A DNA stretch of 64,000 nucleotides from Macrostomum lignano (GCA_002269645.1 NIVC01000218.1:142407-206406); one strand, 5' to 3'; positions 9,921-63,354 are shown, numbered from the stretch's first letter. Numbers and translations are program-made. The notes: generated from the sequence alone by a model not told the origin.

Positions 9921-11859
9921 AAAACTACCATGGATTTCCACAAGTTTAGCTTTAAACATTTGAGCTCAAAGTATCAACTAGCAATCTTTTTTGTTTCTTG
10001 AAGCTGCTATTCTGACTGCAAAAAACAATTCCTAATAACCTTGTTGATTATTTTAAAAATGAAAACTAATCTGATTGATTAAAGTGATCTAGATCCTTTA
10101 TAGTATGTAACTAACTAAAAAACAAGATACTATATTATTATTATAAATGTTTTACTAACTTTAATAAGAATGCAAAATTGCATTCAAGGTTTAGTTTTAA
10201 GATATGCTTTTTTAAAAACAAGAAAGAAAAATTTTTCTTACAAAAAGCAAAAAAATCTGGGTACAATATTGTATTCCAATGTCTAATTTTAAGAGGCAAT
10301 TTAGAAACTCAGGATGATATAACATTCTTATCACACAAAAAACCTAGATTATAAAAACAATTTTGATAGCTAACTTGAAACTAAACAATTGGACTATATA
10401 TCCATATGTATATATAGGCCTTAGAGTAAAATTAATAATTCATAAATCATATATTTATAATAGTTTCATAAGAAAGAAAATTAAGGTAGCTCTAATGAAT
10501 TAAACGATTATAATCAATAATCTATTGTATATCTCTATATATACACTTATATTTATAATTATAATTTATAATTCTTAATGGAAAAATTCTATTAAATAGT
10601 TATTTTATAAAGCAATTTTAGCACCTATTTATGATAGAAAAATTGTGCTGTCTATTTTTTACAAAATCCTAGATGCATTCTATAAGTGCTGATAAAAACT
10701 TGCACACTTGCATATACATTTTTGGCAAAGTTGCATAATTCTAAAAGGTTTATGTGCATACTTTTGTTTGTTCAAAAAACATGCTTGTTTTATTTAAAAA
10801 TGTTGAATATTTCACTTTTCATAGCAAAGCTACTGAGTATTTTATTGACAATAAAGAGAATTATAAAACTTTTTAAAGTATTTATTTAAACTTTGTTGCA
10901 AGTTGCGACCATTCTAAAAAAGTTGTTTAAATAATTTAAGTGCCAAGAAACTTATACAGTTAAGGATAAAAAAATTGCCCAAAAAATTTGAATATAACTT
11001 TTTCTTCCAATAGGGCCTACTACCATGCAAAGATTCCAACCTAGATTGAGGCTCATATATGCCCAACCCTAAAAATTTCACCTATCCAGTGCAACCTAGT
11101 TTTGTCTAGATTTGCAACTTAGTTCCTCTCGATTGCGACTTAGTTCCTCTTGATTGCAACTTAGTTCTCCTAATTGTGACTTAATTTTCACTTTGTATAT
11201 GACTTTTCTTGCCTTTTTCTCTTTTTTTTCTCTTTCTGGTTCTCTCTCCTCTCCTTTCTTTCTTTTCTTTTTCTCTTCCTCTCCTTTCTTTCTTCCCCTA
11301 ATTTTTAGTTTTTTGCATTTTTGATTTTGCGACTTACCTTGGCTGGTGGCCATTTCACCTCTCTCGTTTGGATGGGTGTTGGGCATGTATGTTGAGGCTA
11401 GTGGTGGACTGGTGGTATGTCATATGGTGCTGGCACAGTGGTGGTACAGTGCAAGGAATGGCAATGCATGCTAGATGTTTTAAATTTTAATGTGCAAATG
11501 GAAAAAATTAATTGTCAAAATACAGAATTGGGTATATACGTAATATACAACTGGGCCATTCGATATAATTATGGTTGTAACATGACAGGCTATTTTTACT
11601 TATAAAATGAAATCTAATCATAGAATATACTAAACCAATATTTTCAATGAAAGATTATTTTGTCAAGAATATGTTTATATAGTTTCATATAGATATCATC
11701 ATCATTAGTATAGACTAGCAATCTTTGCCCCCCGATGGGGGACATCTGGATAGAATCCTTGTTCTTTACAAATAACAAATAGACAGCGAAATAAAGCCTT
11801 CAGAAAAAACAACAGACATTCCCTCTTAAAAACAAAACATCCCAAGACAGCAAGCATCC

Positions 11860-12780
11860 TCAGACGGCATTCAAGCATCGATCCCCAAATAGCAAGCATC
11901 CCCCAGACTGCAAGCATCCCCCAGATAGCAAGCATCCCCCGATAGCAAGCAACCCCAGATAGCATGCATCCCCAGATAGCAAGCATTCCCCCAGACCCCA
12001 GATAGCAAGCATCCCCAGATAGCAAGCATCCCGCAGAAAGCAAGCATCCCGCAGATAGCAAGCATCCCCCAGATAGCAAGCATCCCCCAGATTGCAAGCA
12101 TCCCCAGATAGCAAGCATTCCCCCAGATCCCAGATAGCAAGCATCCCCCAGATAGCAAGCATCCCGCAGATAGCAAGCATCCCGCAGATAGCAAGCATCC
12201 CCCCCAGACCCCAGATAGCAAGCATCCCCAGATAGCAAGCATCCCGCAGAAAGCAAGCATCCCGCAGATAGCAAGCATCCCGCAGATAGCAAGCATCCCG
12301 CAGATAGCAAGCATCCCCCCCAGACCCCAGATAGCAAGCATCCCCAGATAGCAAGCATCCCGCAGAAAGCAAGCATCCCGCAGATAGCAAGCATCCCCCA
12401 GATAGCAAGCATCCCCCAGATCGCAAGCATCCCCAGATAGCAAGCATTCCCCCAGACCCCAGATAGCAAGCATCCCCCAGATAGCAAGCATCCCGCAGAT
12501 AGCAAGCATTCCCCCAGACCCCAGATAGCAAGCATCCCCCAGATAGCAAGCATCCCGCAGATAGCAAGCATCCCCCAGATAGCAAGCATCCCCCCCAGAT
12601 AGCAAGCATCCCCCAGATCGCAAGCATCCCCCAGGCAGCAAGCAACCCCTGATAGCAAGCATAACCTGGATACAAAGAGACCTTATAGATATCTAGCAAC
12701 CCCCTCTCAGATAGCAAGTACTCTCCACCCCCAAGAGCAAGCATCCCCCTGATAGCAAGTATCCATCCTTAAATAGCAAG
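11860..12780. repeat. 17-18-bp minisatellite (CCCCAGATAGCAAGCAT)
   Basis: Tandem array inside the Helitron-like element. Confidence 0.95.
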
Positions 12781-17187: not shown

Positions 17188-20037
17188 ATGAATGAAGCAA
17201 AGCTGTCATCGCCTTCGAATGAGGACGGATTACTTCTGCATCACCAGCAGCAGCATAATGCAGCTCTGGTGGTCTCCGACGACGATGCCAAGTTCGTACT
17301 GCAGGCCGCTGCCAGACCGGCTGACCAAACTGGCATCGCCATCGCGTCGTTGTCAACAATAGCGTCAAAATCCGACCCGGACGTCTCCGTCGCCGCTGCA
17401 TGCTGCGGCGACAGCCTGTTTGCCGCTTCACCACCGCCTGCAGATCATGCCGACAACGATGGCCTGTCTCAGCTGAACTCAGCTCAGCAAACTGGCCAGG
17501 ATTCCACTAACGGATCGTCGTACTGCTGCGTACCTGGCACATCCTTCATCTTTGAGTCCCATACAGCTACAGCCGCTGCTGATGATGAAGCTACTTCAAT
17601 TACTACGATCCCAGACTCCGGCTCAGCGTTGGACTTCAAGCCGGAGCCCCCGGTGCTCCATGCGGCTCCCCCTGCCTACGGCTTGGACATGTGGGCAGCC
17701 GCTGCAGCCGTCTCGTCCGGTTGCCAGTACTTCCCGCTGCACCAGCCCAGGATTCTGCCTTCTCACAGCGTCTATCAGCATCCGCAGTTGCCTCCGCAGA
17801 TTCCCCAACAGCTTCATCGCCAGCATCTGCCGCTTCATCTGCAGGATACGGAGTCTGGCAAGATGCTGATTTTACCCGCTAGTCTAGCCGCTAATGTTGA
17901 GGGCAGTCACGCCAGCAATGCCTGCGGCTCTCTCATGCCCTCTGAGGCGCCGAAAAGATGCCGCACCAATCTGACCGAAGAGCAGAAAGTTGAGCTGGAG
18001 AAAGTTTTTGTCAAATCGAAATATCCCGATTATCCCGTTGTGGACGAGCTAAGCAGGCTTGTCGGATTGCCCTACAAGAAAGTGCTGGTAAGTTGGTGGG
18101 CGCGCGTGTATTATGAAATATGACAGTGCTTTGGTCTGGATCAAATCTATTTAAAACAGTTTTTAATGTATCCGTAGGAATTCGCATCCGCCCCTCCATC
18201 AGGAAGAATCCGCCCCCTCCCCAGGAAGAATCCGCCCCTATTACCTACCCCTCTTCTAAGAATCCGTCCCTCCCTCATGAAGAATCCGTCCTTCCTCCAG
18301 GAAGAATCCGCCCCTTCCTACCCTATGAATCCGCCACTCTTCAGGAAGAATCCGCCCCTCCCCCAGGAAGAATCCGCCCCTCCCCCATTAAGAATCCGCC
18401 ACTCCTCAGGAGGAATCCGCCCCTCCCCCATTAAGAATCCGCCACTCCTCAGGAAGAATCCGCCCCTCCCCCAGGAAGAATCCGCCCCTCCCCCATTAAG
18501 AATCCGCCACTCCTCAGGAAGAATCCGCCCCTCCCCCAGGAAGAATCCGCCCCTCCCCCATTAAGAATCCGCCACTCCTCAGGAGGAATCCGCCCCTCCC
18601 CCAGGAAGAATGCGCTACTCTTCAGGAAGAATCCGCCCCTCCCCCAGGAAGAATCCGCCCCTCCCCCAGGAAGAATCCGCCACTCCTCAGGAAGAATTCG
18701 CCCCTCCCCCAGGAAGAATCCGCCACTCCTCAGGAGGAATCCGCCCCTCCCCCAGGAAGAATCCGCCACTCCTCAGGAAGAATTCGCCCCTCCCCAGGAA
18801 GAATCCGCCCCTACCTACCCTAAGAGTCCACCCCTCTTCTAAGAATCTGTCCCTCCCTCATGAAGAATCCGTCCTTCCTCCAGGAAGAATCCGCCCCTCC
18901 TCCAGGAAGAATCCGCCACTCCTCAGGAAGAATCCGCCCCTCCCCCAGGAAGAATCCGCCCCTCCCCCAGGAAGAATCCGCCACTCCTCAGGAAGAATTC
19001 GCCCCTCCCCCAGGAAGAATCCGCCACTCCTCAGGAAGAATCCGCCCCTCCCCGAGGAAGAATCCGTACTAGTATCCGTACTAAATAAGCTGCAGCAGCA
19101 CTGTGTCCCGAACAGCTTCGCACACCCAACCAACACAAAGGTGTGGTTTAAAAACCGGCGAGCCAAGGAGAAGCGCACGCACAAGGCCGACGTGGACCTG
19201 TGCACCATTGACCAGCTGCACCAGCATCAGCAGCAGCTGCTGCAGCATCGCAAGACTTTGCCCAGTACATGTAACAACAGCGACAACGAGAATGGCTCGT
19301 CATCTGTAGCGGAAGGCGAAGCTTCTTCATCTTACACAGCCGCTGCGGGCGTCTCGATTTCCGCTTTCAACGCAGCCGTAGCCGCGGCCGCCGCTGCCGC
19401 AGTCACTCAGACTCAGCAGCAGCAGCAGCAGCATCCGCTCTCGCAGTTCCCCTATGCTCAGTACTCTGCCCCTATGCGCAAGTGCACTGCTGCTCCCCAA
19501 CACCAGGTAGCGGCGTCTCCGGCGTTGCAGCAGCTGCCTCCGCCGCCGCCACCGCCACCACCGATGCAGGGACCGCCAGCGGCCACTTACTGGATCGAGC
19601 CGGCCGCCACCGTCCCAGGCCTGATGAAGTACGAACCCGTGGGCGTGCCATCTGCTCCGCTCTATCATCACTATAACTATCACCCAGCTTTCCCTGCTGT
19701 TCATCACCACCAGCAGCAGCATCAGCCGCAGTTTCAGCCACCTCCGCCACCTCCGCCGCCTCCGCTGACTCATCATTTCGTATTCGTATCGGCTGAGAAC
19801 ATGGCTACGCAGACTTCGCCAACGATGCTATTAGATTTCACCGATAACAACGATGAAAATAACAATAATCTTCATAATGCTAACGATGATAGTCATAATA
19901 ATGCAATTATTAGTCCCGGAAACGACGTCTGCTACAATTTGACCGCCTGTCAAACCGACAGCATCGGCGGAGTTGGCGTTGTCGACGACGACGGAGGGGT
20001 CTTCGGATTAGAAGACGCGGGCGAATCGTTAAACTGA
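17188..20037 (+). CDS. Paired-class K50 homeodomain transcription factor (goosecoid-like), 2 exons, 598 aa
   Basis: Exon 17188-18087 (KKVL|gtaagt) joins exon 19141-20037 (aag|VWFKNRRAKEKR) in phase 0, at the usual PRD-class helix-3 intron position. Homeodomain PKRCRTNLTEEQKVELEKVFVKSKYPDYPVVDELSRLVGLPYKKVLVWFKNRRAKEKRTH. Flanks are rich in polyQ/A/P/H. Confidence 0.9.
18180..19065. repeat. 22-bp minisatellite in the homeobox intron (CCCCAGGAAGAATCCGCCCCTC)
   Basis: Tandem array. Confidence 0.95.
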
Positions 20038-23773: not shown

Positions 23774-24134
23774 CTCGGATGATTGATTGATTGTTTAAAC
23801 AAAATTATGATTTTTTATCAGCCTTAGGCTTAGAATTGGCTATGATTGAATTCGATTAACCAAAGATGTAGCAATTTCTTGAGACTACAAATGTACAGAA
23901 AAGAAATGTCTATGGCTGCAAGTGGGCAGCTATGGTGAGTAATTAATCAGTCCTGAGACTCCTAAACTTAGAATTCTGCTTGCGAGTCTGCAGATATTTC
24001 TGTTGCTATGTGAAGGAGGGCGGTGTTGTTTATTACAAGAAGCAGACACAGTGTGTACTTTTATTGCAAAAGGTCACATTGTTTCAAAAATAACAAATCC
24101 GAATGGTGTCTTAAGTAGTCAATGCGTTAGTAGC

Positions 24135-24860
24135 CTGTTAGACAGAGTCACCTGTTAGACAGAGTCACCTGTTAGACAGAGTCACCTGTTAGACAGAGTC
24201 ACCTGTTAGACAGAGTCACCTGTTAGACAGAGTCACCTGTTAGACAGAGTCACCTGTTAGACAGAGTCACCTGTTAGACAGAGTCACCTGTTAGACAGAG
24301 TCACCTGTTAGACAGAGTCACCTGTTAGACAGAGTCACCTGTTAGACAGAGTCACCTGTTAGACAGAGTCACCTGTTAGACAGAGTCACCTGTTAGACAG
24401 AGTCACCTGTTAGACAGAGTCACCTGTTAGACAGAGTCACCTGTTAGACAGAGTCACCTGTTAGACAGAGTCACCTGTTAGACAGAGTCACCTGTTAGAC
24501 AGAGTCACCTGTTAGACAGAGTCACCTGTTAGACAGAGTCACCTGTTAGACAGAGTCACCTGTTAGACAGAGTCACCTGTTAGACAGAGTCACCTGTTAG
24601 ACAGAGTCACCTGTTAGACAGAGTCACCTTTCAGACAGAGTCACCTGTTAGACAGAGTCACCTGCTAGACAGAGTCACCTGTTAGACAGAGTCACCTGTT
24701 AGACAGAGTCACCTGTTAGACAGAGTCACCTGTTAGACAGAGTCACCTGCTAGACAGTCACCTGTTAGACAGAGTCACCTGTTAGACAGAGTCACCTTTC
24801 AAACAGATTCACCTTTCAGACAGAGTCACCTGTTAGACAGAGTTTATAGTCACCTGTTAA
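24135..24860. repeat. Highly homogeneous 17-bp minisatellite (CCTGTTAGACAGAGTCA)
   Basis: Near-perfect tandem array. Confidence 0.97.
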
Positions 24861-25296
24861 ATAGAGGTAATCAGCTGTTTAGTGGAATTTGTCACGGGTA
24901 TGACAATTCATAATGCAATTATACATTTAAAACAGCTGATTGAGCGCAATCACGAAAGAATTACCAATACGTTGATTGATGCCTGCTCCAAACTCGCATT
25001 GGGAGTTTCATGACTGGTTGATTGATGCGCACACTGCTAAAAACTCATATCAAGAGCCACTGAGATATAAAAAACCGATTTAACACGTATGCAGCTCATG
25101 CAAACAATTCGCATTGTAATTTGCCAGCTCAACTTTTATTAATCAGCTGATAATGATTTCTCAGATACAATTATGGAACTGATAAAATCTCATGAAACAG
25201 CGCCAATCAGAGTCAAGCAGTGGACGGTCATTCAGTCGGACATCCGTGACCACTACCAGCAGGCGCAGATCGCAGCGGTCATCCTTGCCATCGCAG

Positions 25297-25723
25297 CTAG
25301 CCACGAAGCTTCAGCTGGCCCCTCACGCAGCGGTACATCCACGGATTGTAGCAGGCGACGCCGCACTTCCAGTGGTACCTGGGGCACAGGAAGTAGCCGT
25401 CAATGCAGCGGTGCGTTCTCGGGCTGTAGCAGGTGCCGGCGCAGGAGCGGTCGCCGCCGCTGCAGGCGAGGCCGGAGTCGAGCTGCGAGAGGAGGTCGGG
25501 GCGGAGAGACTTGCTCAGGGACTGAGAGCTCGAGAGATCAGGTAATCTGACCGCATAATCAGGACTTGAGCCGGGTAAGTTGGATTAAGGACCGAGACAG
25601 AATCAACACTTTACGGCATTCTGAGAGCAAATGTACGAGTATTCCCTTTTGTTGAAAATATCCGAGTTGCTCGCTTACCTGCATCGCCAGGAGAGCCAGC
25701 AGACAGAAGCAGAGCACCTTCAT
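25297..25723 (-). CDS. Secreted CBM52-like 8-Cys peptide, copy 1 (76 aa precursor)
   Basis: Exons 25723-25679 and 25482-25297, 196-nt GT-AG intron: MKVLCFCLLALLAMQ|LDSGLACSGGDRSCAGTCYSPRTHRCIDGYFLCPRYHWKCGVACYNPWMYRCVRGQLKLRG*. TATAAA at 25836-25831; AATAAA near 25140-25135. Confidence 0.9.
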
Positions 25724-26189
25724 GTTGAGCAGACGATTGGATGTGGCTGAGTTGCAAGCAGAGAGAGCGAAACTTGTAGCAGGAGAGTCGAGAGTTGAGC
25801 ATGATTTCACTGCGAGTTGAGCAGCTCGCATTTATAGGGTCTGCCACTCACCTGCCCACTGCCTCCCACCTGCCAGCTGCTGCCTCCCACCTGCCCGCAT
25901 GCGTCAGTGAGAACAAATTTGCACCTGCATTTTTTCAGACATTTGCTGAGCACCGCTGTTTGCCAGTAGGTTTCATACTGTTGGCTTGTTGATTGCGCAA
26001 TCGGTATACAGTACTCAGTGACAATTAGAGTTCTGGACTTTACTACTCGTAATTGCCTTCCTTCTACAAAATATTTTCCAGTTAGTTATAAAGTCCACGT
26101 ACACTAGCTGTAAACAACCTGTAGTTTACAGGTCTCTGATGCTCTCTCGAACTGAGATTGCTGGAGGTGCAGCTGGTTTAAACTGCTGT

Positions 26190-26460
26190 TTACCGGGTGT
26201 TTACCAGGTGTTTACCTGTTTTTTACCTGGTGTTTACCTGGTGTTTACCTGGTGTTTACTTGGTGTTTACCTGGTGTTTACCTGTTGTTTACCTGGTGTT
26301 TACCTGGTGTTTACCTGGTGTTTAACTGAAGTTTAACTCGTGTTTAACTCCTGCTTAACTAATTGTTTAACTTCTTTTTACCTGGTCTTTAACTGGTGTT
26401 TACCTGGTGTTAAACTCGTGTCTAACTGGTGTTGAACTGATGCTTAACTGGTGTTTAACT
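26190..26460. repeat. 11-bp minisatellite (TTTACCTGGTG)
   Basis: Tandem array in the spacer of the inverted duplication. Confidence 0.9.
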
Positions 26461-26496
26461 GCTGTTTCAACGGCTGTTTTGACTACAATTAACTAA

Positions 26497-28113
26497 ACAA
26501 CAACAACAACAACAGCAGCAAAGTACGCTGTCAGGTGGAAAAAAGCAGCGTTACAGGGCACGCTTCAGAACCTGGGCGCGAACAAAGGCCGCACCGCCGG
26601 CAGAGTCCGGGGCGCCAGCGTCGGCCAGCAGGCAGTCGACGAAACGCCGAGTTCGGGCCTGGCCGCGCCGGTAGGGTGCCTGCAGCGTTAGCAGCAGCAC
26701 CTCCTGCACCGGCTGCGGGCAGTAGGACTCGGCGCGGATGATGTGGCCTGCCAGCTGGAGTCGCCGAAGTCGCGGCAGTTCACTTGGACGGGCCAGGCCG
26801 GCACGGCGATAGAGTGCCGCGTTGGTGATCCGCTCGTCGCTGATCTTAAAGGCGGCGCGCAGCAGGCCAGCGTGCGCCGCGTTGATTTGCTGTTCGAGCG
26901 AATCCGTCAGCGTCCAGGTCTCGGCGTTGTACAACAGGACGGTCTCGACCACCGCCTGGAACAGCGCCGCCCTCTGGCGATCAGGTGGGGCCTCGGACTG
27001 CAGGACTACCCTCACAGAGCGAAAGGCAGCCCAAGCGAGCCCGCGGCGACGCCGCAGATCTTCGCGGACGTCAGGTACCAGACCGCCGAGGTAGACGAAC
27101 TGCTGACAGCGCGGAAGCTCCGTTACCTGCCCGCCAGCGCCTCGGCAGAAAATTGCGGCCTCGATGTCGCCCGGCACGCAGAGCACAACGGTCTTCTTCG
27201 TGTTGACCACCAGGCTGACGCTCGCTGCAGCGCTAACCAGCTTGTCCAGCTGGCGCTGGGCGCCCTCTATGTTCGAGGACAGCAGGGCGAGGTCATCGGC
27301 GTAGCCAAGCACGCTGAGCCGTTTCTCCGGTTGACGTCGACCCACGCGTCGCCGCAGTAGGAAGCCGTCTTCGTCGGTAGGAAGAGCAGTTTGTAGCACC
27401 CAGTCAAGCACCAGGACGAACAAGAACGGCGCTAGAGTGTCCCCCTGGAGCACCCCAGGGGATGTCTCTAAGGAGTCCTACAGGCCGTCCGGCGTCATCA
27501 CAGCTGCTCTCGTAGCACAGTACAACGCCATTATGGCGGAGATCAGCTGTTCTGGTACATGATACGCACGGAGCACATGTGGGAGCGCAGCCCTCGCAAC
27601 CGAGTCGAATGCCTTCATGAAGTCAATGAAGGCAACAATCAGGTCCAACTGGCGCGTGCGCGCCTTCTGGATGATTCGGCGAAGAGCTAGGATCTGCGCC
27701 AGTGTGCCACGGTGGGGCCGAAACCCGTTCTGCTCAGGTCGCAGGTAGGGATCCAGCACGGGTTGCAACCACGATAGCAGCATCCGATTGAACAACTTTG
27801 CTTTGCTCGTCTAGCCGTGTAGTGCCCGGCTTTTTTTGGAATGGCGATGATGTGCGCCATGGTCCACTCGGTGGGTGCCATTTCACCGGAAAGCACGCGG
27901 TTAATCACACGGGCGACCTCACAGTGGATGCGCAGCGCCTCGATGGGCACTTCGTCCGGACCCAGCGCCTTGCCGCCCGGCGTCTTCTGGGCGAGCATTA
28001 CGACTTCAGCCATGGTGACTGGCACCGTTAAAACTGTCCTCTGACGGCAACGGCGTCTCTGGCGGCAGCGTCAGGATGTTAGGCAGCAGGGGTGGCGGCG
28101 CGTTGATTATGGC
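26497..28113 (-). mobile_element. 5'-truncated, inactivated RTE-like LINE (reverse transcriptase fragment)
   Basis: RT motifs KALGPDEVPIEA, AIPKK, EQNGFRPHRGT, FIDFMKAFDSV, GVLQGDTLAPFLF, LGYADDLALL and FVYLG. In-frame TAG (PDGL*DSLETS) and a frameshift or deletion near 27800. (GTT)n tail at 26497-26520. Probable TSD AATTAACTAA at 26487-26496 and 28118-28127. Confidence 0.9.
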
Positions 28114-28399
28114 GACTAATTAACTAAGAGTTTGATAAAATATTGAGCTTATTCAACGCATTGATAGGCAACCTGCATGCACTTTTTTGGTGAGCGAAAC
28201 CACCTTCTCAGATTCATCCACTCGATATTGAAACGATGCTCAACTACTCGTAGCACGACTTGCTCGTAGCCAAAGACCCGTCACAGTGGCATACAGCACC
28301 GTTGCTGCTCAGGCAGAGCTCTCGTACAATTACGAGCGTAGCGGCAAACAAAAGTGCAGGTGCAAATTTGTTCTCGCTGACCGATCGCTGACGCATGCG

Positions 28400-28500
28400 G
28401 GCAGGTGGGAGGCAGCGGGCAGGTGGGAGGCAGCGGGCAGGTGGGAGGCAGCAGCTGGCAGGTGAAAGGCAGAGGGCAGGTGAGTGGCAGACCCTATAAA
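28400..28500 (+). promoter_or_regulatory. E-box array plus TATA box upstream of peptide copy 2
   Basis: Five GGCAGGTG units (CAGGTG at 28402, 28420, 28438, 28459, 28477), one CAGCTG at 28452, then TATAAA at 28495. Confidence 0.55.
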
Positions 28501-28609
28501 TGCGAGCTGCTCAACTCGCAGTGAAATCAAGCTCAACTCGATTCTCCTGCTACAAGTTTCGCTCTCTCTGCTTTTGCAACTTAGCCACATCCAATCATCT
28601 CTGCTCAAC

Positions 28610-29036
28610 ATGAAGGTGCTCTGCTTCTGTCTGCTGGCTCTCCTGGCGATGCAGGTAAGCGAGCAACTCGGATATTTTCAACAAAAGGGAATACTCGTAC
28701 ATTTGCTCTCAGAATGCCGTAAAGTGTTGATTCTGTCTCGGTCCTTAATCCAACTTACCCGGCTCAAGTCCTGATCATGCGGTCAGATTACCTGATCTCT
28801 CGAGCTCTCAGTCCCTGAGCAAGTCTCTCCGCCCCGACCTCCTCTCGCAGCTCGACTCCGGCCTCGCCTGCAGCGGCGGCGACCGCTCCTGCGCCGGCAC
28901 CTGCTACAGCCCGAGAACGCACCGCTGCATTGACGGCTACTTCCTGTGCCCCAGGTACCACTGGAAGTGCGGCGTGGCCTGCTACAATCCGTGGATGTAC
29001 CGCTGCGTGAGGGGCCAGCTGAAGCTTCGCGGCTAG
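28610..29036 (+). CDS. Secreted CBM52-like 8-Cys peptide, copy 2 (76 aa precursor)
   Basis: Exons 28610-28654 and 28851-29036, 196-nt intron (gtaagc...ctctcgcag). Protein identical to copy 1. TATAAA at 28495-28500, AATAAA at 29193-29198. Confidence 0.9.
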
Positions 29037-29634
29037 CTGTGATGGCAAGGATGACCACTGCGAGCTGCGCCTGCTGGTAGTGGTCACGGATGTCCGACTG
29101 AATGACCGTCCACTGCTTGACTCTGATTGGCGCTGTTTCATGAGATTTTATCAGTTCCATAATTGTATCTGAGAAATCAATATCAGCTGATTAATAAAAG
29201 TTGAGCTGGCAAATTACAATTCGAATTGTTTGCATGAGCTGCATACATGGTTAATCGGTTTTTTATATCTCAGTGGCACTCGATATGAGTTTTTAGCAAT
29301 GCGCGCATCAATGCTGGAATAGCTGTATAACATTGAGCCATTGGAAACTGCAGTTCACGCAGTGTCTGTTCAAGCAATAGCACTAGTTCCATTGCACATG
29401 AAACTGCCATGTTAAGCCATGTACTTGTACAAGTATATAACTGTTTACTTTCTAATCCAGCTTATTAGAAAAAATACTGTAGTTTATGAATAGTAATTTA
29501 TGGTAGTGGGCAAGCCTCAACTGCTGGACATCCTCAGCTAGGTGAAGGTGCCGACGGCGTCGGGGTGATTACGGAATGCTGGAGAGAATAGCTGAGAATG
29601 TCGAGAAATTCGCATCAGGGTTTCAAGAGTCACC

Positions 29635-29812
29635 TGGTGCCACCTGCTAAGGTCCAGAAGCTACGCCTGGTAAAGGCCAGTGACCAACGAAGTTAGAGCT
29701 GATGCAGACACGTGTGATCGACGTGCTGGTGAGATCTGGACGCCTGGAAAGGCTGCACTGAAGCGCAGTGCTGATTGGCGCAAAGGGGTGTACTGGATAC
29801 ATTGGCGCTATA
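29635..29812 (+). repeat. Unclassified interspersed repeat (second copy about 53490-53630)
   Basis: Shared blocks gtgccacc..aggtccagaagct and aggctgcactga.gcgcagtgctgattggcgca.aggggtgtactg at both sites. Confidence 0.65.
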
Positions 29813-30059
29813 CAGAATCGCCATGAAAGAATCGAATTGCTGAGAGGTCAGGCCTCATGAGTAGAATATTTGAAGATCTTTGGCTCATAGGGGTCGGTGA
29901 GATGCCAAGGGTCAATATTGGGAGTTGTTGGTAGTCGAAGCATTGAAGGGCCGCCTCCTACTTGCACTTTATGCTATTTAGTCTCGTGTCGCGGCCGCTG
30001 AGTTGGCGGATTTTGGCAAAATATTTCTCGCCAGCCTGATTTGCCAAGCACTGCACTCA

Positions 30060-30700
30060 AAAGGGACTCCGCACTGTGCAGCAAGACCGTGCAGGCCCTC
30101 AAAGATGCCTTACGCGCGAGAAGGCCCTACCGACAAGTGGCAATAAAGAGGAGCTAGCTGACAGGCCGCCTGCTCGCTGCAAGCTCGAATGCGCCCCCAG
30201 CGAGCTTGAGGACGACGACCAGGACGAAGCTGACGCTAAACCAGAGGAGAGCCGGACATAGGAGAGAGGGGAGATTTGATTCGGCTGCTATCCCGGACTC
30301 CCTGGACGTGAGACAGAAATTGGGAGGATGAGAAACCTGTCGCGGCGGCCCTAAGCGGATGGCGTCTGCTAGACAGTCCAATACAATATTTTAATTCCAT
30401 GCGAGACAGCTGCTCGCACTGCCGCCTGCCCTGCCGCTCGAGCCTGTGGCCGGTCCTGTCGCTGTCAGCTGCCACTTTGACATCAGTCTGCTCGGCGACT
30501 TGGACGCAGAGTTTCTGAGCTCGGGCATTCGCGATAGTCGGCAAACTAGACTGGTTCTGCAAAGTGGCCAAACCTGCAAAGGCCCTGCTCCGCGCGCGCA
30601 TGGATATTAACATCGCCATTCATGAGCAGCATCAACGAGTACCGGTGCGTGGCGAGCTCCTAGCCCAGTTGCAGTTCTGGCAACATGCCAACCGTCCGAC
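30060..30700 (+). mobile_element. Decayed retroelement relic (SAP-like motif and DIRS-like RT/RNase H linker)
   Basis: Frameshifted KTVQALKDALRAR/LPTSGNKEELADR resembles a SAP motif. IVGKLDWFCKVAKPAKALLR...VRGELLAQLQFW resembles the DIRS-type GKL..A...P....LR...E...L.WW linker. Judged by eye only. Confidence 0.4.
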
Positions 30701-31761
30701 GTGTTCCCGACCGACGGGCTCGAGTGCTGGAAGCGGTCGAGACAGAAGCCTGCGTTAGTGCCACTGGCTTGATCCTGAGAACCTCTGATGGCCTGCGCGA
30801 GTTCCGCCTCGTCGACTTCTGCAGCCTCGGTCTCTGGCGCGGTTCTCGATCGCAGCGAGTTGCGACAGGTGGAGCTGCTGGCGCTTTGACCTGGCAGGTC
30901 CGGTCCGTCTTGTTTTATTTCTTCTGCGCTTCGTTGATTTGATTTGGCCCGACTGTCTCTCCCTCCCGCTTTCATTTGGCGTTGGGGTTCGCTTCCCCTT
31001 TTTGGACCGGTTGTGACAGTCTGTTGTGGCACTTGCTTTTGCTCTGCCTATGTCTTTTGGCGTTTAAGTGGCTCAACAAGGTCAAAACGTACATTTAGTT
31101 GATTCCAAAAATTATCTCTTCACTTGTTGCATCCCTAACGGGGTGGGGGGGGGGGAAATTGCTCGTAAAAAGAGTTAGTCGTACTGACAAACACCTGATA
31201 TCATGGCAAAAGTGGGTGAGTGACAAGAGCACGGATTTGATCCCCAATCACCATTTTCAACTCAGCATCCAGTATACAAGTACATGTAGTACAGGTTATT
31301 ACATGTTATTCGTAATTGTGGTAAGATGGAAAAGCTGTAGTCCAGTGTCCCATTTTACACACCTGCAATATGAAGTTATAGCGGTTATCGAATTCGATGT
31401 AGTCTAATAATAACCGAATGGTCATCCTTGCCTTACTGACAGAATTTGGATTATGTAGCATTAATCTCCATTAATCTCTTGCAGCTACACGCATCTGTAT
31501 AATCGCTAATGATCAGCGGCAAACCGTTGTCCCCAAAACACCCAGGTGCAGAGTGCGCAGGGCGATTCCTGCGATAGCAAACTCAGTATACAGTTTGAAC
31601 AATTTGTATTTGTAATTTGAGCTCAATGTAATAATTCGGCCAATATATATTTCTGCATGAAAGAGCGCCAATCAGAGTCAAGCAGTGGACGGTCATTCAG
31701 TCGGACATCCGTGACCAATACCAGCAGGCGCAGCGCGCAGAGGTCATCCTTGCCATCACAG

Positions 31762-32188
31762 CTAGCCGCGAAGCTTCAGCTGGCCCCTCACGCAGCGGTA
31801 CATCCACGGATTGTAGCAGGCCACGCCGCACTTCCAGTGGTACCTGGGGCACAGGAAGTAGCCGTCAATGCAGCGGTGCGTTCTCGGGCTGTAGCAGGTG
31901 CCGGCGCAGGAGCGGTCGCTGCCGCTGCAGGCGAGGCCGGAGTCGAGCTGCGAGAGGAGGTCGGGGCGGAGAGACTTGCTCAGGGACTGAGAGCTCGAGA
32001 GATCAGGTAATCTGACCGCATGATCAGGACTTGAGCCGGGTAAGTTGGATTAAGGACCGAGACAGAATCAACACTTTACGGCATTCTGAGAGCAAATGTA
32101 CGAGTATTCCCTTTTGTTGAAAATATCCGAGTTGCTCGCTTACCTGCATCGCCAGGAGAGCCAGCAGACAGAAGCAGAGCACCTTCAT
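31762..32188 (-). CDS. Secreted CBM52-like 8-Cys peptide, copy 3 (one G>S change)
   Basis: Exons 32188-32144 and 31947-31762, 196-nt intron. Mature N-terminus reads CSGSDRSC instead of CSGGDRSC. TATAAA at 32301-32296. Confidence 0.9.
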
Positions 32189-33766
32189 GTTGAGCAGACG
32201 ATTGGATGTGGCTGAGTTGCAAGCAGAGAGAGTAAAACTTGTAGCAGGAGAGTCGAGAGTTGAGCTTGATTTCTCTGCGACTTGAGCAGCTCGCATTTAT
32301 AGGGTCTGCCACTCACCTGCCCTCTGCCTTTCACCTGCCTGCTGCCTCCCTACAATTGTGCAATCAACAAAACAACACCGGAAAAGCCTACTGGCTTACA
32401 GCATTGCTCATGAAATCTTTGAAAAAATTGCAGGTGCTAAAGTTGTTCTCGCTAACCTTCTTTGATGTACGCAGGCTCGCAAGTGGTAGGCAGCGGGCAA
32501 GGTTTGGAGGCAGCGGGCAGGTGCATGGTGGAATAAATAATAAAAAAAAACAATACGAGCATTATCTGTTCACCATTTTTGTAGCAGAAACGATCGAGGT
32601 TCAATAGAGGATCGTAAAAATTGGATACGTTCAGTGACGTTCCTGCAACAAAAAAGTTACGTATCGGAGACGTCGAACTTTCTATTGGATACATAATTTT
32701 GCTGCTCGGGGGGGGGCAACACATTTAGAGGCCTTGGGACAGGTAAATATATGAAAGTCGTTAAAAACAAACGCAGTTAATTGTTGTCTTTAAGCCCGGC
32801 ATATGAATTTTAAAACAAATTATCAAAAGTTTTTGTTAAGTAAGATTTATTAGTAATTGACAAAGTCCTTTCTAATATTAAAAAATATATATAAACATTT
32901 TAAAAGAAAAACAAATAAAAATTTTATCTTTTAAGCCATAAGTCGTACTTTCCTGCAAAAAATTACCTCGTGGACTCATGACCTTGCTCGTAGAGTTGTC
33001 CAGTGTTTGACATCATAGTTTCTCTGTTAATTAAACATTACTTTGTTATCATTTCATGAGTGATTTAAATTTATAAAACTTCAGCCTTCATTTTTAAGTT
33101 CTGAGCCCTTTGCTTTGCCGTCTGCTTTTTGTTTTTTTCTACATACGGAGCCTGACCCCTGCACCTTTCATTTGATTAGGGAACAGAACAACTAGGCCTA
33201 ACATTTTATAATCTTAACCTTAACGCTTTAGTACTTTAAGTACTTTATGGACTAAGTACCGACTTACCATTAAGATCTTTTTTTCACTTTCAAGCTCTAA
33301 CTCTAGGCCTAGTAATAAAATTAATGCCAATCCATTGTTGAAAAATGAATTTATACAATGACACAGCTGACAATTTTCTTAAAGAAAAGTAAGGATTATT
33401 TTTTTACTTTTTTACTTAGACTTTGTTTACATTTAAAACTCTAAGTAGTCCTACTTAATAGATAATTTAAGTCATTTTTAATTTTTTCTTATTTATTATA
33501 CAAATATAGACAGTTGATTTTTTGCTTAAATTAGGGTAGGGCCTAACTAGTGAGAATAAGTAAGTTTAGAAGGCCTTTTTTAAGATATGCATCTGATAGA
33601 AGACTATAGGCCCTACTGGAATTACAAAATAGCTGTAGTCATTAATCATTATAAAATAATAAAAAAGTTAGCTTTTTTAAACAATTTAAATAGGCCTAGA
33701 AAAGTATAAATGTTATAAATAATCTATTGCTGCAAATATATCTTATACAGTTTCTAGTTTCTAGTA

Positions 33767-36999: not shown

Positions 37000-39900
37000 A
37001 TGACTAGTCTACATGCCGATTTCGATAGCGACTATTATTCGACAGAGCAGGATTTGTCTTCTTATTCTTCGGTTTTAAGTCCTACTATTCGATTAGATAA
37101 TAGTCAGGCTAATTATTGTCCGAATTGCAATTGCAATGGTCAGTGTCGAAGGCTGGCTGCTGCTGCTGCTGAACAGGGACCAAGTCAAACTGGTGCCAAC
37201 ATCGATTTGCAGCACGCTGTTGAGGTCAGAATGTTGAATAATCGTGTCAGCTTGGGTCATAGGCGGCCTAAGTCACGGTTTCATGATCAGTTTGAGCTCA
37301 TTTTTTGTTGTTGGTAGATTGCGTCATAGACAGTTTCAGTTGTTGCCAGATTGAGTCATAGACAGTTTCAGTTGTTGCCAGATTGAGTCATAGACAGTTT
37401 CAGTTGTTGCCAGATTGAGCCATAGACAGTTTCAGTTGTTACCAGATTGAGCCATATACAGTTTCAGTTGTGGGCAGATTGAGCCATAGACGGTTTCAGT
37501 TGTTGGCAGATTGAGCCATAGACGGTTTCAGTTGTTGGCAGATTGAGCCATAGACGGTTTCAGTTGTTGGCAGATTGAGTCATAGACAGTTTCAGTTGTT
37601 GGCAGATTGAGTCATATACAGTTTCAGTTGTGGGCAGATTGAGCCATAGACGGTTTCAGTTGTTGGCAGATTGAGCCATAGACGGTTTCAGTTGTTGGCA
37701 GATTGCGTCATAGACAGTTTCAGTTGTTGGCAGATTGAGTCATAGACGGTTTCAGTTATGGGCAGATTGAGTCATAGACGGTTTCAGTTATGGGCAGATT
37801 GAGTCATAGACAGTTTCAGTTGTTGGCAGATTGAGTTATATACAGTTTCAGTTGTGGGCAGATTGAGTCATAGACGGTTACAGTTATGGGCAGATTGAGT
37901 CATAGACGGTTTCAGTTGTTGCCAGATTGAGTCATAGACAGTTTCAGTTGTGGGCAGATTGAGTCATAGACGGTTTCAGTTGTTGCCAGATTGAGTCATA
38001 GACGGTTTCAGTTGTTGCCAGATTGAGTCATAGACAGTTTCAGTTGTGGCTTGTGGGCAGATTGAGCCATAGATTGAGTTATACGCATTATAAAAATCTT
38101 TCTCATAATTTTGATTTCAACTTTCTAAACAGAAAATGGTGAAATTGAACCAAGAGAACTTCGATCTTCGCTTGCACTGCTATCACCTGAAAGAGAAACT
38201 GGACAGATTAGGCCAAAGTCAGAGCAGATCGGCCGAACTAGATTCTGTAAGTTTTGATTTATTAATTAATGTATTAATTTAGATTCTTTGTTTATCAATT
38301 CGATTCACCAGTGAGAGCAGAATTTGTCAGTTTTTGAATTATGGGGCCCTGGATTTATGCCGCTGAATTTGTGTCGGAAATAGTTTATTTATGGTGCCGT
38401 TTCCTCTGTTATTATTATTATTACTATTTGATGTGTGATATTTGCGTCGGGTGATTCTATATTCGGTTTTATTACTGCGCGTGCCCAGCTAGTTTAGCCA
38501 CAACTTTTATTCCGCTTGCGATGCAAGTTATATGCTGTGGGATCAGAATATTTTGGGATCGTAATATTGGCTTGCTAATCCGTCTATCTTTTATCTCACT
38601 GTGTTCCCATCTCCCCTCCTGTCTTCCCATCTCCCCTTCTGTCTTCCTATCTCCTATTCTGTCTTTCCATCTCCCCACCTGTCTTCCCATCTCCCCTTCT
38701 GTCTTCCTATCTCCCATTCTGTCATCCTATCTCCCCTTCTGTCTTCCTATCTCCCCACCTGTCTTCCCATCTCCCCACCTGTCTTCCCATCTCCCCTTCT
38801 GTCTTCCCATCTCCCCACCTGTCTTCCCTTCTTCCCTCCTGTCTTCCCATCTCCCCTCCTATCTTCCCGTCTCCCTTTCTGTCTTCCCATCTCCCTTTCT
38901 GTCTTCCCATCTCCCCTCCTGTCTTCCCATCTCCCCTCCTGTCTTCCCATATCCCCTTCTGTCTTCCCATCTCCCTTCCTGTCTTCCCATCTCCCCTCCT
39001 GTCTTTCCATATCCTCTTCTTTCTTCCCATCTCCCCCCTCCTGTCGACTCACCTAGCCTTCCTGTCGAGCCTCCCCATCTGCCATTCCCATCCTAATTCG
39101 AAATCCCAAACCAAGCCAAAAGTCCCAAATTCACCCGCAGAGCCAGCAGGCCTACTGGGAGGAGGAGACCGGCCGGCTGCGGCGCGAGCTTCGCGATCAG
39201 GACGGCAAGCTGCGGGAGCTAGCCGCCGAGCGGGACTCCCTGCAGTCGGATAATTCTCACCTGCGTGACCTGCTGCAGAAGGTTGGCATTGCTTTTTTGG
39301 GAACTTAGAATTCTGGGAGATTCTGGCTTCTGGGAGATCGTACACCTGAAGCTCCAATGAGTAGCTGATGAGGCCACACCTGAAGCTCCAATAAGTAGCT
39401 GATGAGGCCACACCTGAGGCTCCAATAAGTAGCTAATGAGGCCACACCTGAAGCTCCAATGAGTAGCTGATGAGGCCACACCTGAAGCTTCAATGAGTAG
39501 CTGATGAGGCCACACCTGAAGCTCCAATGAACAGCTGATGAGGTCACACCTGAAGCTCCAATGAGCAGCTGATGAGGCCACACCTGAAGCTCCTATGAGC
39601 AGCTGATGAGGCCACACCTGAAGCTCCAATGAGCAGCTTATTGAGACATCTGAAGTCTCAATTAGTAGCTCAAAATGGCACAGCTAGCTTTAATAAATAG
39701 CTGTTTCTATAAAACCCGTTTCTATGCCGTTGCTATGCTAAATTCCAATTACAGTGGGAGCAGCAGGAGTCGCCATCTGGCCTCGGCGGCGGCTGTTTGC
39801 ACTATGCGCCCAGCAGCAGCACTCCCTGGTCAAAGAGCGGCGCCAGCAGTGGCGGAGCTGCTGTAACATCGGCGGCAACAATTGGCGCTTCTGCAACACC

Positions 39901-40355: not shown

Positions 40356-43227
40356 CTGGAGCTATAAAATGCGCTCAAATTCTCAATCGCCGCTCATTCC
40401 CGATCCCCCCGTCCCACGCAGCGCGATGGCAGCTCTCAGACGTCGCCAAACCATCCGACATCGTCTGACGCGGCCACTGAGGCGGAGCTGCTGCCTCTGA
40501 CCTTAGCTGACCTGGCCGGCCCGCCGCTTGCTACAGGCTTGGCGTCCGGCGGCAGCAGCGTCGCGGGCCTCGACGACTCGCCTCAGTGCAACCTCAGCGC
40601 TGCCGCCGCTGCCCAAACTCTGCGCCAGCTGATGTCCCGCGTGCTGGCCAGCCAGACAGCCCTGCGCATCGCACTGGCCGACGAGGACGCCGCTGTCAGT
40701 GAGGTCGTTGACAAGGATGATGAACCAACTGTTCAACAGTTCAGCGCCGCCAACAACAATGGCACAGCCAATCTGGAGGGCGACACGGGAGAATCGAACC
40801 TCCAACGTCAGGTGGCCGACGTTCGATCGGCCGCTCGACTGCTGTGCCGACAATTGGCTGTCTTGTTTGGCGGTGAGTCTCGCCCTCTGTAGCTGGCGCC
40901 CCCTCTGTAGCTGGCGCCCCCTCTGTAGCTGGCGCCCCTCTCTGTAGCTGGCGCCCCTCTCTGTAGCTGGCGCCCCCTCTGTAGCTGGCGCCCCTCTCTG
41001 TAGCTGGCGCCCCTCTCTGTAGCTGGCGCCCCCTCTGTAGCTGGCGCCCCTCTCTGTAGCTGGCGCCCCCCTCTGTAGCTAGCGCCCCCCTCTGTAGCTG
41101 GCGCCCCCCTCTGTAGCTGGCGCCCCCCTCTGTAGCTGGCGCCTCCCTCTGCAGCTGGCGCCCCTTCTGTAGCTGGCGCCCCTCTCTGTAGCTGGCGCCC
41201 CCTCTGTAGCTGGCGCCCCCCCTCTGCAGCTGGCGCCCCCTTACTTGCCTACTAAAACAATTCACTGAAGTGAGTGTTACAAACAGTAGCTATTATTTTC
41301 CAATTACTCACCACAGAGCGATCCCCTCCATCTGTCGCGTCCTCAAGCGATTCCGACAACAAGCGCAGCCATCGCAAAGTAAATTTATTAGCCATCAATG
41401 CGTCAGTGCAGACTCTATCGTTTGAACGACTGCCGGAAGTTCAGCAACTATTGGAAGAATTGGCTAGACAAAGGTCTCGAGTTGAACAATTCACTGACGC
41501 TGTGGAGTCTCGGGCCGATGCCCTGGCTAAGGAGCGAGTTCAACCATTAGCCAGAGAGTTGGCTAAGAGCCTGGCTAAGGAGCAGGCGGAAGTGTTGGCT
41601 GTGCAGCGAGCCGAAGCCCTGGCCCGTCAGTGGTGCGAGTCTATGGCCAAAGATCGCGCCGAGATCATCGCCAGGGGACGAGCGGAGGTTCTGGCCGAAT
41701 CTATCGTGGCGGATAGGGCCGAATCTATTGCCAAGCGTAGAGCGGAAGTGCTGGCCAGGGAGAAGGCGGAAGTGATAGCTAGAGATCGGCTGGCTGTTCT
41801 AACGCGCGGTATGAATGACACTCTAGCTAGGGAGAAGGCCGAGTTTATGCAGAGAGCCGAGTCGCTTGTCAATGAAAAGGCGCAGTTATTGGGAGCGAAA
41901 TTGGCCAATAATATCGCTAAGGAGAGAGCGGAAGTGCTTGCTCAACAAAGAGCGGAAGTTCTTGCTCAACAAAGAGCGGAAGTGCTCGCTAATGAGAAAG
42001 CGGAAGTTCTTGCTCAACAAAGAGCGGAAGTGCTCGCCAATGAGAAAGCGGAAGTGCTTGCTCAACAAAGAGCGGAATTGCTTGCTCAGCAAAGAGTGGA
42101 AGTGCTTGCCAACGAGAAAGCGGAAGTTCTTGCTCAACAAAGAGCGGAAGTGCTTGCCAATGAGAAAGCGGAAGTTCTTGCTCAACAAAGAGCGGAAGTG
42201 CTCGCCAATGAGAAAGCGGAAGTTCTTGCTCAGCAAAGAGCGGAAGTGCTCGCCAATGAGAAAGCGGAAGTTCTTGCTCAGCAAAGAGCGGAAGTGCTTG
42301 CCAATGAGAAAGCGGAAGTTCTTGCTCAGCAAAGAGCGGAAGTGCTTGCCAATGAGAAAGCGGAAGTTCTTGCCCAACAAAGAGCGGAAGTGCTTGCCAA
42401 TGATAAAGCGGAAGTTCTTGCCCAACAAAGAGCGGAAGTGCTTGCCAATGAGAAAGCGGAAGTTCTTGCCCAACAAAGAGCGGAAGTGCTTGCCAATGAG
42501 AAAGCGGAAGTTCTTGCTCAACAAAGAGCGGAAGTGCTTGCCAATGAGAAAGCGGAAGTTCTTGCCCAACAAAGAGCGGAAGTGCTCGCCAATGAACGAG
42601 TTGACTCACTCGCTCGCGACCGGATCGAGGCGCTCGCTAAAGAGATGCTGGCCTCTTTTAATCGGTCGAAATCGTCCAGCAATTCGCCTCCGCCAGTCAC
42701 CGACAATCCCCAGCAGCGCTCGTCGCCGGAAGCTGACAGTAGCACCGATCGACATCGAGTTGAACGTCAGGCCAGACGGCTTCGCTCCGAGTTGGACACG
42801 TGGCGCGGCCTGGCGGAACGGTGGAAACTGGAGGCAGCCCAGTCAGATGATGCCAGAGCGGCTGCTCAGGCCCAGCTGGACAGTCTCCGAGCTGCATCTG
42901 AGCAGCTGCGACGTCAGGCTGCTGTTGCCTCATCAGCTAGCAAGGATCCAGACGCTTCCGCCGCTGTCAAGGCTGAGAACGAGCGACTCAAAAGCGAGCT
43001 AGTAGCGGCTGCAGCGTAAGCAGCTACTTTCTTGTACCGGCATTTAAGTACATAGGGCACTTTGTGCATACTTATGGTGTCTGATTTTTTATTTCAGTGA
43101 CGCTTTGAGCAGCCGAGAAGAAGCTCACAGGCTGCACGCAAAATTAGCTGCCGTGTCTGAGCAGTGCGAAGCGTTGCGGCTGCAGCTAGAAAGGTATATT
43201 TATCTGTTTCTGTCTGTCTATCTGTCT

Positions 43228-50820: not shown

Positions 50821-63354
<12,534 letters not shown>

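Follow-up and report, generated by a model that had tools for sequence, protein, structure and literature searches.

Three near-identical flatworm genes predicted to encode a secreted single-module CBM52 peptide

Binding of beta-1,3-glucan by the carbohydrate-binding modules of family 52 (CBM52; Pfam PF10645, Carb_bind) is known only for two fungal proteins, Eng1 of the fission yeast S. pombe and GBP of M. oryzae. Without its module, Eng1 is neither active on insoluble substrate nor targeted to the septum (PMC3627985), and GBP (MGG_05232) of Magnaporthe oryzae is a secreted CBM52 protein that experimentally binds beta-1,3-glucan and fungal walls (10.1101/2025.07.03.663104). In a 64-kb stretch of flatworm DNA, the whole of which is called the window here, an earlier note had described a triplicated gene for a secreted, cationic, fungal CBM52-like mini-protein. 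We identified three paralogous gene copies at this locus (named A, B, and C), each of which has its own TATA promoter and is predicted to encode a signal peptide and a single CBM52 module with eight cysteines, and nothing else. These copies evolve in concert, and by homology with the two fungal proteins we consider it fairly probable that they encode a secreted, single-module mini-lectin that binds beta-1,3-glucan, likely in host defence.

The comparison with Eng1 revealed both common and distinct features. The flatworm peptide contains a homologous module of around 50 amino acids (aa), which passes the Pfam cut-off and aligns with Eng1-type modules at an hhalign probability of 98.9%, and the two have the framework C-G-x-x-C-Y-x-P-x-x-Y-x-C ... 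L-C-P ... C-G-x-A-C-Y-x-P-x-x-Y-x-C-x-x-G-x-L in common. In contrast to Eng1, in which a GH81 catalytic domain is combined with three modules, the flatworm protein is one stand-alone module. Furthermore, the modules of Eng1 are of a 6-Cys type lacking C1 and C12, whereas the flatworm module has 8 Cys and is strongly cationic and encoded by an animal. GBP, consisting of a signal peptide and CBM52 with no catalytic domain as in the flatworm peptide, is the best functional analogue, although it is fungal, acts on the fungus's own wall, and is likened here by description and not by sequence.

The closest relatives of the peptide are encoded by BOX15_Mlig018268 g1/g2/g3 of Macrostomum lignano (PAA46576.1, PAA69175.1, and PAA45991.1; UniProt A0A267DBQ1), with an identity of 72% over residues 1-67 based on phmmer and of 70% over a 54-residue BLASTP alignment. 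The signal peptide with a single module, the position of Cys1 behind the predicted cleavage, the presence of three gene copies, and the cationic character of the peptide (counted from the sequence of the homologue) are shared with the window copies. The M. lignano models differ in having no GQLKLRG tail, because they stop directly behind their final Cys (...YRCT) or shift out of frame (the 84-aa model), and they represent a divergent paralogue or another species relative to the window copies. One of these proteins carries the automatic UniProt name 'Endo-1,3(4)-beta-glucanase 1 carbohydrate binding domain-containing protein', and nothing published on Mlig018268 was found in the searched literature. 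Two further animal-encoded proteins, OWA54156.1 of Hypsibius exemplaris (automatically named 'Tenascin-X') and CAF1132197.1 of Adineta ricciae, contain the same module, and the Hypsibius protein passes the cut-off of PF10645. Unlike the flatworm mini-protein, they are arrays of 11-14 modules (about 14 in Adineta) with 664-766 aa and show no marked positive charge, and their sequences are as distant from the flatworm peptide as those of fungal modules.

Precursor, family membership, and predicted fold of the peptide

Copies A and B encode the same 76-aa product, MKVLCFCLLALLAMQLDSGLACSGGDRSCAGTCYSPRTHRCIDGYFLCPRYHWKCGVACYNPWMYRCVRGQLKLRG. Its signal peptide starts with M-K, continues with a hydrophobic core of 12 residues, and carries G at position -3 and A at position -1 directly ahead of Cys1; T and A take these places in the M. 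lignano homologue (T-D-A before Cys1). The precursor would be secreted and cleaved after DSGLA, judging from these residues, and the predicted cleavage product is a four-disulfide, all-beta module of 6.35 kDa. The mature peptide of 55 aa has the composition that the earlier note had given, with 8 Cys, 7 Arg, 2 Lys, 2 Asp, and 8 aromatic residues; it contains no Glu, and its calculated pI is 9.2. The net charge of +7 is the highest when compared with 97 homologous domains (mean -1.2, standard deviation 3.1, maximum +6). Amidation of the C-terminus via the terminal Gly, also raised before, would be speculative, and the M. lignano models end differently, without a terminal Gly.

The resemblance to CBM52 held in comparisons of profile hidden Markov models (HMMs). 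PF10645 matches the precursor with 33.7 bits (E 4.3e-8) and the mature peptide with 34.9 bits (E 1.8e-8), above the Pfam gathering cut-off of 25 bits and across the full profile (positions 1-49 of 49). The internally duplicated half with four Cys described for this predicted secreted, stand-alone mini-protein was recovered as well; it corresponds to a single Pfam domain built of two similar halves, not to two domains. The hhalign comparison (E 1.4e-17) was made with a profile of 13 modules of the Eng1 or Dikarya type (named A2), which include the three repeats of P0133, a GH81 endo-1,3-beta-glucanase of Savitreella. This enzyme, in which GH81 is followed by three C-terminal Carb_bind domains, was also matched directly by phmmer with a library-wide E of 9e-4.

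When 1.84 billion representatives were searched exhaustively with HMMER, 135 relatives were obtained at E<=1e-3; a word-index search with the 76-aa protein or a 38-sequence profile found almost nothing, and the relatives come from the exhaustive search. In the alignment of 38 sequences (named A1), there is no variation at C8, C20, C27, C34, C38, and C46, and conservation reaches at least 90% at C12 and Y39. The window peptide carries all these residues together with C1, which makes it a member of the 8-Cys subtype (191 of the 353 domain instances). The non-cysteine consensus of the family is also kept: each half has its CY-x-P, Y-x-C and Y44 are present, and G-x-L follows the final Cys. Membership of the window protein in CBM52/PF10645 is supported by sequence.

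A better match to galaxin-like repeats had been named as the competing outcome. The Pfam matches to Myticin-prepro (E 2.1, 9.1 bits against a cut-off of 28.5) and Nodulin_late (E 0.044, 14.6 bits against a cut-off of 30.4) are insignificant, and neither galaxin nor a further animal family appeared among the matches at E<=10. A galaxin or myticin identity was rejected, as no profile match of this kind is significant.

The AlphaFold2 model based on the 38-sequence alignment has a predicted local distance difference test score of 95.4 and is all-beta, with eight short strands arranged as 4+4. No solved structural relative was found by sequence, and nothing significant was obtained with Foldseek in the PDB (best E 3.2) or in the BFVD fold search. 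The best BFVD match, a marginal one, is A0A6G6ABL3 of Borely moumouvirus (E 0.47, probability 0.77, template modelling score 0.53, 24% identity over 54 columns), and this giant-virus protein may contain the same module.

Gene structure and divergence of the three copies

Three copies and no more were identified in the window by a six-frame HMM scan, in which the exon-2 frame of copy A scored 82.7 bits. Every checkable detail of the earlier description is correct, namely three intact two-exon genes with a TATA box and a 196-nucleotide (nt) intron each (Table 1). The introns (GTAAGC...CTCGCAG) are in phase 0, follow codon 15, and interrupt the coding region of the signal peptide. A TATAAA is located 113-115 nt 5' of the ATG in all three copies, and an AATAAA lies 157 nt 3' of the stop codon in copies A and B. 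Copies A and B are arranged head to head, and B and C tail to tail. The differences between the coding regions are also as described: two synonymous changes separate A from B (codons 57 and 75), and the protein of copy C has one substitution, G25S.

The genes had been said to be missing from the list of open reading frames (ORFs) in the true frame, and the exon-2 frame is indeed present there as a 20-aa fragment only. Antisense ORFs of 117-125 aa overlie the same DNA because the coding strand is very rich in G and C at third codon positions (GC3 0.92). The GC3 of a neighbouring host gene deviates in the same direction (0.79). The M. lignano homologue P0003 aligns with residues 1-67 and spans the exon junction without a gap, so the splice model is independently supported. 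With its host-like intron, TATA promoter, and GC3, the gene looks native to a Macrostomum-like flatworm.

Table 1. Positions of the three gene copies, their repeat units, and the other features of the window.
Feature	Position	Strand	Details
Copy A	25297-25723	-	ATG 25723; exon 1 25679-25723, intron 25483-25678, exon 2 25297-25482; 76 aa
Copy B	28610-29036	+	exon 1 28610-28654, intron 28655-28850, exon 2 28851-29036; 76 aa
Copy C	31762-32188	-	exon 1 32144-32188, intron 31948-32143, exon 2 31762-31947; 76 aa
Unit A	25021-25902	-	promoter to 3' flank; TATAAA 25831-25836, AATAAA 25135-25140
Unit A CAGGTG motifs	25854, 25872, 25893, 25927	-	upstream of gene; 25927 just outside unit end
Unit B	28430-29312	+	TATAAA 28495-28500, AATAAA 29193-29198
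Unit B CAGGTG repeats	28402-28477 (starts)	+	five tandem, ~18-21 nt; first two just upstream of unit start; sixth CAGGTG at 28357
Unit C	31652-32350	-	TATAAA 32296-32301, two CAGGTG motifs; shorter than A and B
11-nt tandem array, GGTGTTTACCT-like	26134-26489	.	repeat family D4; between copy A promoter and reverse-transcriptase remnant
Degraded reverse-transcriptase remnant	26551-28025	-	retrotransposon, RVT_1 E 2e-9 and 2.9e-9 on two ORF pieces, several frames
Homeobox gene	17188-18123 and 18610-20037	+	homeodomain 1-45 at end of first ORF, 42-57 (KVWFKNRRAKEKR) in second
581-aa ORF	41274-43019	+	~20 copies of 16-aa coiled-coil-like repeat
LamG ORF	54515-55435	-	intron-less, 306 aa, signal peptide, Laminin_G_3 (concanavalin-like lectin)
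Tandem arrays	20048 onward (13-nt), 23976-24800 (17-nt), 37174-37985 (32-nt)		
Further short-period tandem arrays	11705-12744, 50821-52071, 55743-57036, 58273-59367		

The duplicated units extend from around 180 nt 5' of the ATG to around 110-275 nt beyond the stop codon, the homology of unit C to A and B stopping around 110 nt past the stop codon. Based on blastn, unit B (28430-29312) is 96.7% identical to unit A (25902-25021) over 886 nt, and unit B (28443-29145) is 96.9% identical to unit C (32350-31652) over 706 nt. The divergence is unevenly distributed within these units. The 427-nt gene body including the intron has 1-4 differences between copies (0.2-0.9%), whereas the flanks (around 285 nt) diverge by 3.6-10% (Fisher p 0.008, 8e-9, and 6e-11 for gene body against flank). 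Since the gene body including its intron is far more alike than the flanks, the pattern points to gene conversion, that is, concerted evolution of the transcribed core. The earlier suggestion that the gene was amplified for dosage is a reasonable guess; what can be read from the DNA itself is concerted evolution.

Among A, B, and C, the intron is no more variable than the exons. Purifying selection on the protein alone as the cause of the similarity is not shown by these data, because the intron is equally invariant. For the same reason, the coding differences (two synonymous and one non-synonymous) carry no information on the ratio of non-synonymous to synonymous rates, and an inference of selection from them was dropped. 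An Rfam scan of 24500-33000 found no family that would explain the conserved intron, and its conservation is better explained by gene conversion than by a structured-RNA family.

Tandem repeats resembling GGCAGGTGGGAGGCAGC, around 18-21 nt long and each with an E-box-like CAGGTG, are located just 5' of every TATA box (28402-28490 in B, 25854-25927 in A, and 32319-32342 in C). Within 260 nt of the ATG, CAGGTG occurs six times in B (five proximal in tandem), four times in A (three proximal), and twice in C. These repeats could be an enhancer that varies in copy number, but CAGGTG/CACCTG is common in the window, with 124 sites.

Distribution, possible function, and origin

A taxonomic source could be assigned to 30 of the 135 relatives, around 100 being without a label. 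The labelled animal relatives are from M. lignano (flatworm), Hypsibius exemplaris (tardigrade), and Adineta ricciae (bdelloid rotifer), the fungal ones from Chytriomyces hyalinus, Savitreella, and Rhodocollybia, and the others are one EukProt protist and one protein in an uncultured Dokdonia bacterial bin. The 8-Cys form is found not only in the flatworm but also in Chytriomyces, Hypsibius, a protist, and most environmental relatives, while the Eng1-type and Agaricales modules have six Cys, without C1 and C12. The label 'fungal' in the earlier note is too narrow for a peptide with tardigrade, rotifer, protist, and chytrid relatives and with 8 Cys instead of the six of the Dikarya/Eng1 subtype; on these assignments, the module is not fungus-specific. 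Fusions to a papain protease, fasciclin, ricin-B, and CBM96 occur among the relatives. No discussion of CBM52 outside fungi or in Macrostomum was found in the searched literature, in which the 18 papers that name CBM52 deal with fungi or are surveys of carbohydrate-active enzymes.

Two of the relatives were inspected individually. The protein from the bin named 'uncultured Dokdonia sp.' (P0014, WP_299685284.1) has 148 aa and two modules and lies on a 34-kb contig; either this contig is eukaryotic and was mis-binned, or the family has a true bacterial member. The second relative, P0093, comes from a bioreactor metagenome (ENA contig L001 901-1143) and has 80 aa, with a signal peptide and one 8-Cys module; its gene is intron-less, and the contig looks eukaryotic (a fragmentary kinase exon) and has no taxonomic label.

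For the function of the flatworm peptide, we propose the following. The secreted 55-aa peptide would form two repeated four-strand, disulfide-stapled beta units. Its homology to the modules of Eng1 from fission yeast and of GBP from Magnaporthe makes chains of beta-1,3-glucan its most likely ligand. The aromatic residues plausibly aid the predicted binding, as in other carbohydrate-binding modules, and the high positive charge may be an adaptation to a role as a lectin-like host-defence or pattern-recognition peptide. The glucan target would be foreign or dietary, because the flatworm has no glucan wall. The peptide may coat or damage glucan-walled microbes such as fungi and oomycetes; alternatively, it may act in the gut and capture the chrysolaminarin of diatoms from the diet. 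M. lignano is fed on diatoms in the laboratory, and the storage compound of diatoms is a beta-1,3-glucan. Glucan binding and the biological role are what we infer here, as are secretion and the cleavage site.

Several points weigh against this proposal. The characterised members are of the 6-Cys Dikarya subtype, whereas the window peptide is of the 8-Cys subtype, and the specificity may vary because the modules are fused to very different partners. No CBM52 structure was found in the structure libraries searched, so the ligand site is unmappable. The gene identifier Mlig018268 was not found in the paper texts or in the M. lignano transcriptome supplements that were searched. Finally, neither AATAAA nor ATTAAA was found within 400 nt downstream of copy C (31362-31761), which may have another 3' end or be expressed more weakly.

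Nothing is overturned by the proposal, as the domain assignment of the M. lignano homologue is already automatic in UniProt and the function is a putative one. A stand-alone, highly cationic CBM52 of a flatworm, together with its tardigrade and bdelloid rotifer relatives, shows that small invertebrates use this scaffold too. The 55-aa peptide could be a new animal molecule that recognises beta-glucan or acts against fungi, a candidate that is cheap to test, and the locus is a clean, small example of concerted evolution in a tandem or inverted gene cluster.

The patchy occurrence in micro-invertebrates invites the idea of horizontal acquisition, which is possible. A tentative explanation, which we hold to be somewhat unlikely, is that the Macrostomum lineage received the gene from a fungus or some other microbial eukaryote with a glucan wall and that domestication (intron, promoter, codon usage) and amplification followed. 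The family is best known from fungi, and the flatworm, the tardigrade, and the bdelloid rotifer are the only animals among the 30 assignable relatives. The animal sequences show no special mutual similarity, Hypsibius ranking 55th of 85 by distance, and the nearest neighbours of the flatworm peptide are unlabelled metagenome proteins, with papain, ricin-B, and CBM96 fusions that look microbial. However, the neighbour-joining domain tree (55 columns) has no supported node, with the best sister at 39% of 100 bootstraps, and most relatives are without a taxonomic label. The spliceosomal intron, the TATA promoter, and the host-like GC3 argue against a transfer, as does the 8-Cys subtype, which is that of the chytrid, the protist, and the tardigrade and not the Dikarya type. 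Any transfer would be old, because the gene is shared at 72% identity with the M. lignano BOX15_Mlig018268 family and is older than the separation of two Macrostomum lineages. A eukaryotic module of ancient origin that was lost in a patchy manner would explain the data just as well.

The glucan-binding function was also weighed against a cationic, disulfide-stabilised antimicrobial or toxin-like peptide that disrupts membranes or cell surfaces, for which the CBM52 scaffold would be a mere frame with glycan binding lost or irrelevant. The exceptional charge, the small size with four presumed disulfides and predicted secretion, and the multi-copy, homogenised family, as is common for genes of effectors and antimicrobial peptides, all agree with such a peptide; the weak similarity to Nodulin_late and Myticin-prepro reflects a generic Cys-rich look only. 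Nevertheless, the non-Cys consensus is kept (CY-P in both halves, Y44, and G-x-L), which argues for constraint on the ancestral surface, and no antimicrobial peptide family matches significantly in Pfam. We therefore regard this alternative as unlikely.

Origin and function would be combined if an ancestor of Macrostomum had taken up a microbial glucan-binding module and turned it into a strongly cationic, secreted mini-lectin, present in several concertedly evolving copies, for defence or pattern recognition against beta-glucan-walled microbes. This combined scenario is rather improbable; if true, it would represent a previously unrecognised kind of animal defence or pattern-recognition molecule.

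A role in reproductive or glandular secretion (seminal fluid, prostate, shell or adhesive glands), and not in immunity or digestion, is a further alternative. Such secretions of Macrostomum are known for many small, fast-evolving proteins. Among the seminal-fluid candidates of Macrostomum, a large share are small secreted proteins (PMC5977470). The gene is multi-copy and lineage-restricted, with the 72% identity to its M. lignano relatives standing below the 83% of the neighbouring LamG protein. Mlig018268 was not found, however, in the searched supplements of the positional RNA-sequencing paper, and we consider this role quite improbable. That the copies are unexpressed relics or an artefact of assembly duplication is hardly credible: copy C has no canonical poly(A) signal within 400 nt, but every copy has an intact reading frame, intact splice sites, and an intact TATA box, the divergent flanks with their different contexts and orientations argue against an artefact, a GC3 of 0.92 is an extreme value typical of maintained, expressed genes, and the M. 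lignano homologues bear transcript-style locus names.

Other features of the window

The assignment of the window to an animal genome agrees with two other genes (Table 1). The LamG ORF has a single database relative, A0A1I8I643 of M. lignano, with an identity of 83%. Together with the best matches of the mini-protein itself, this points to a free-living, Macrostomum-like flatworm as the source, which is probably a species other than M. lignano, unless the locus is a divergent paralogous one; genomes of further Macrostomum species are available (PMC10468722). In the homeobox gene, the pieces of the homeodomain lie in two successive ORFs, so the homeodomain is split by an intron; a proline-rich repeat is present in the gap of around 490 nt and at the beginning of the second ORF.

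The reverse-transcriptase remnant and the 11-nt array separate the promoters of A and B, which point away from each other, and are context, not part of either gene. The window is packed with short-period tandem arrays, which is why it contains many spurious long ORFs, such as those with HRQVGSID repeats. The Pfam match of the 581-aa ORF to the phage T4 family Gp5_trimer_C (E 1e-13) is most likely an artefact of its repeat composition.

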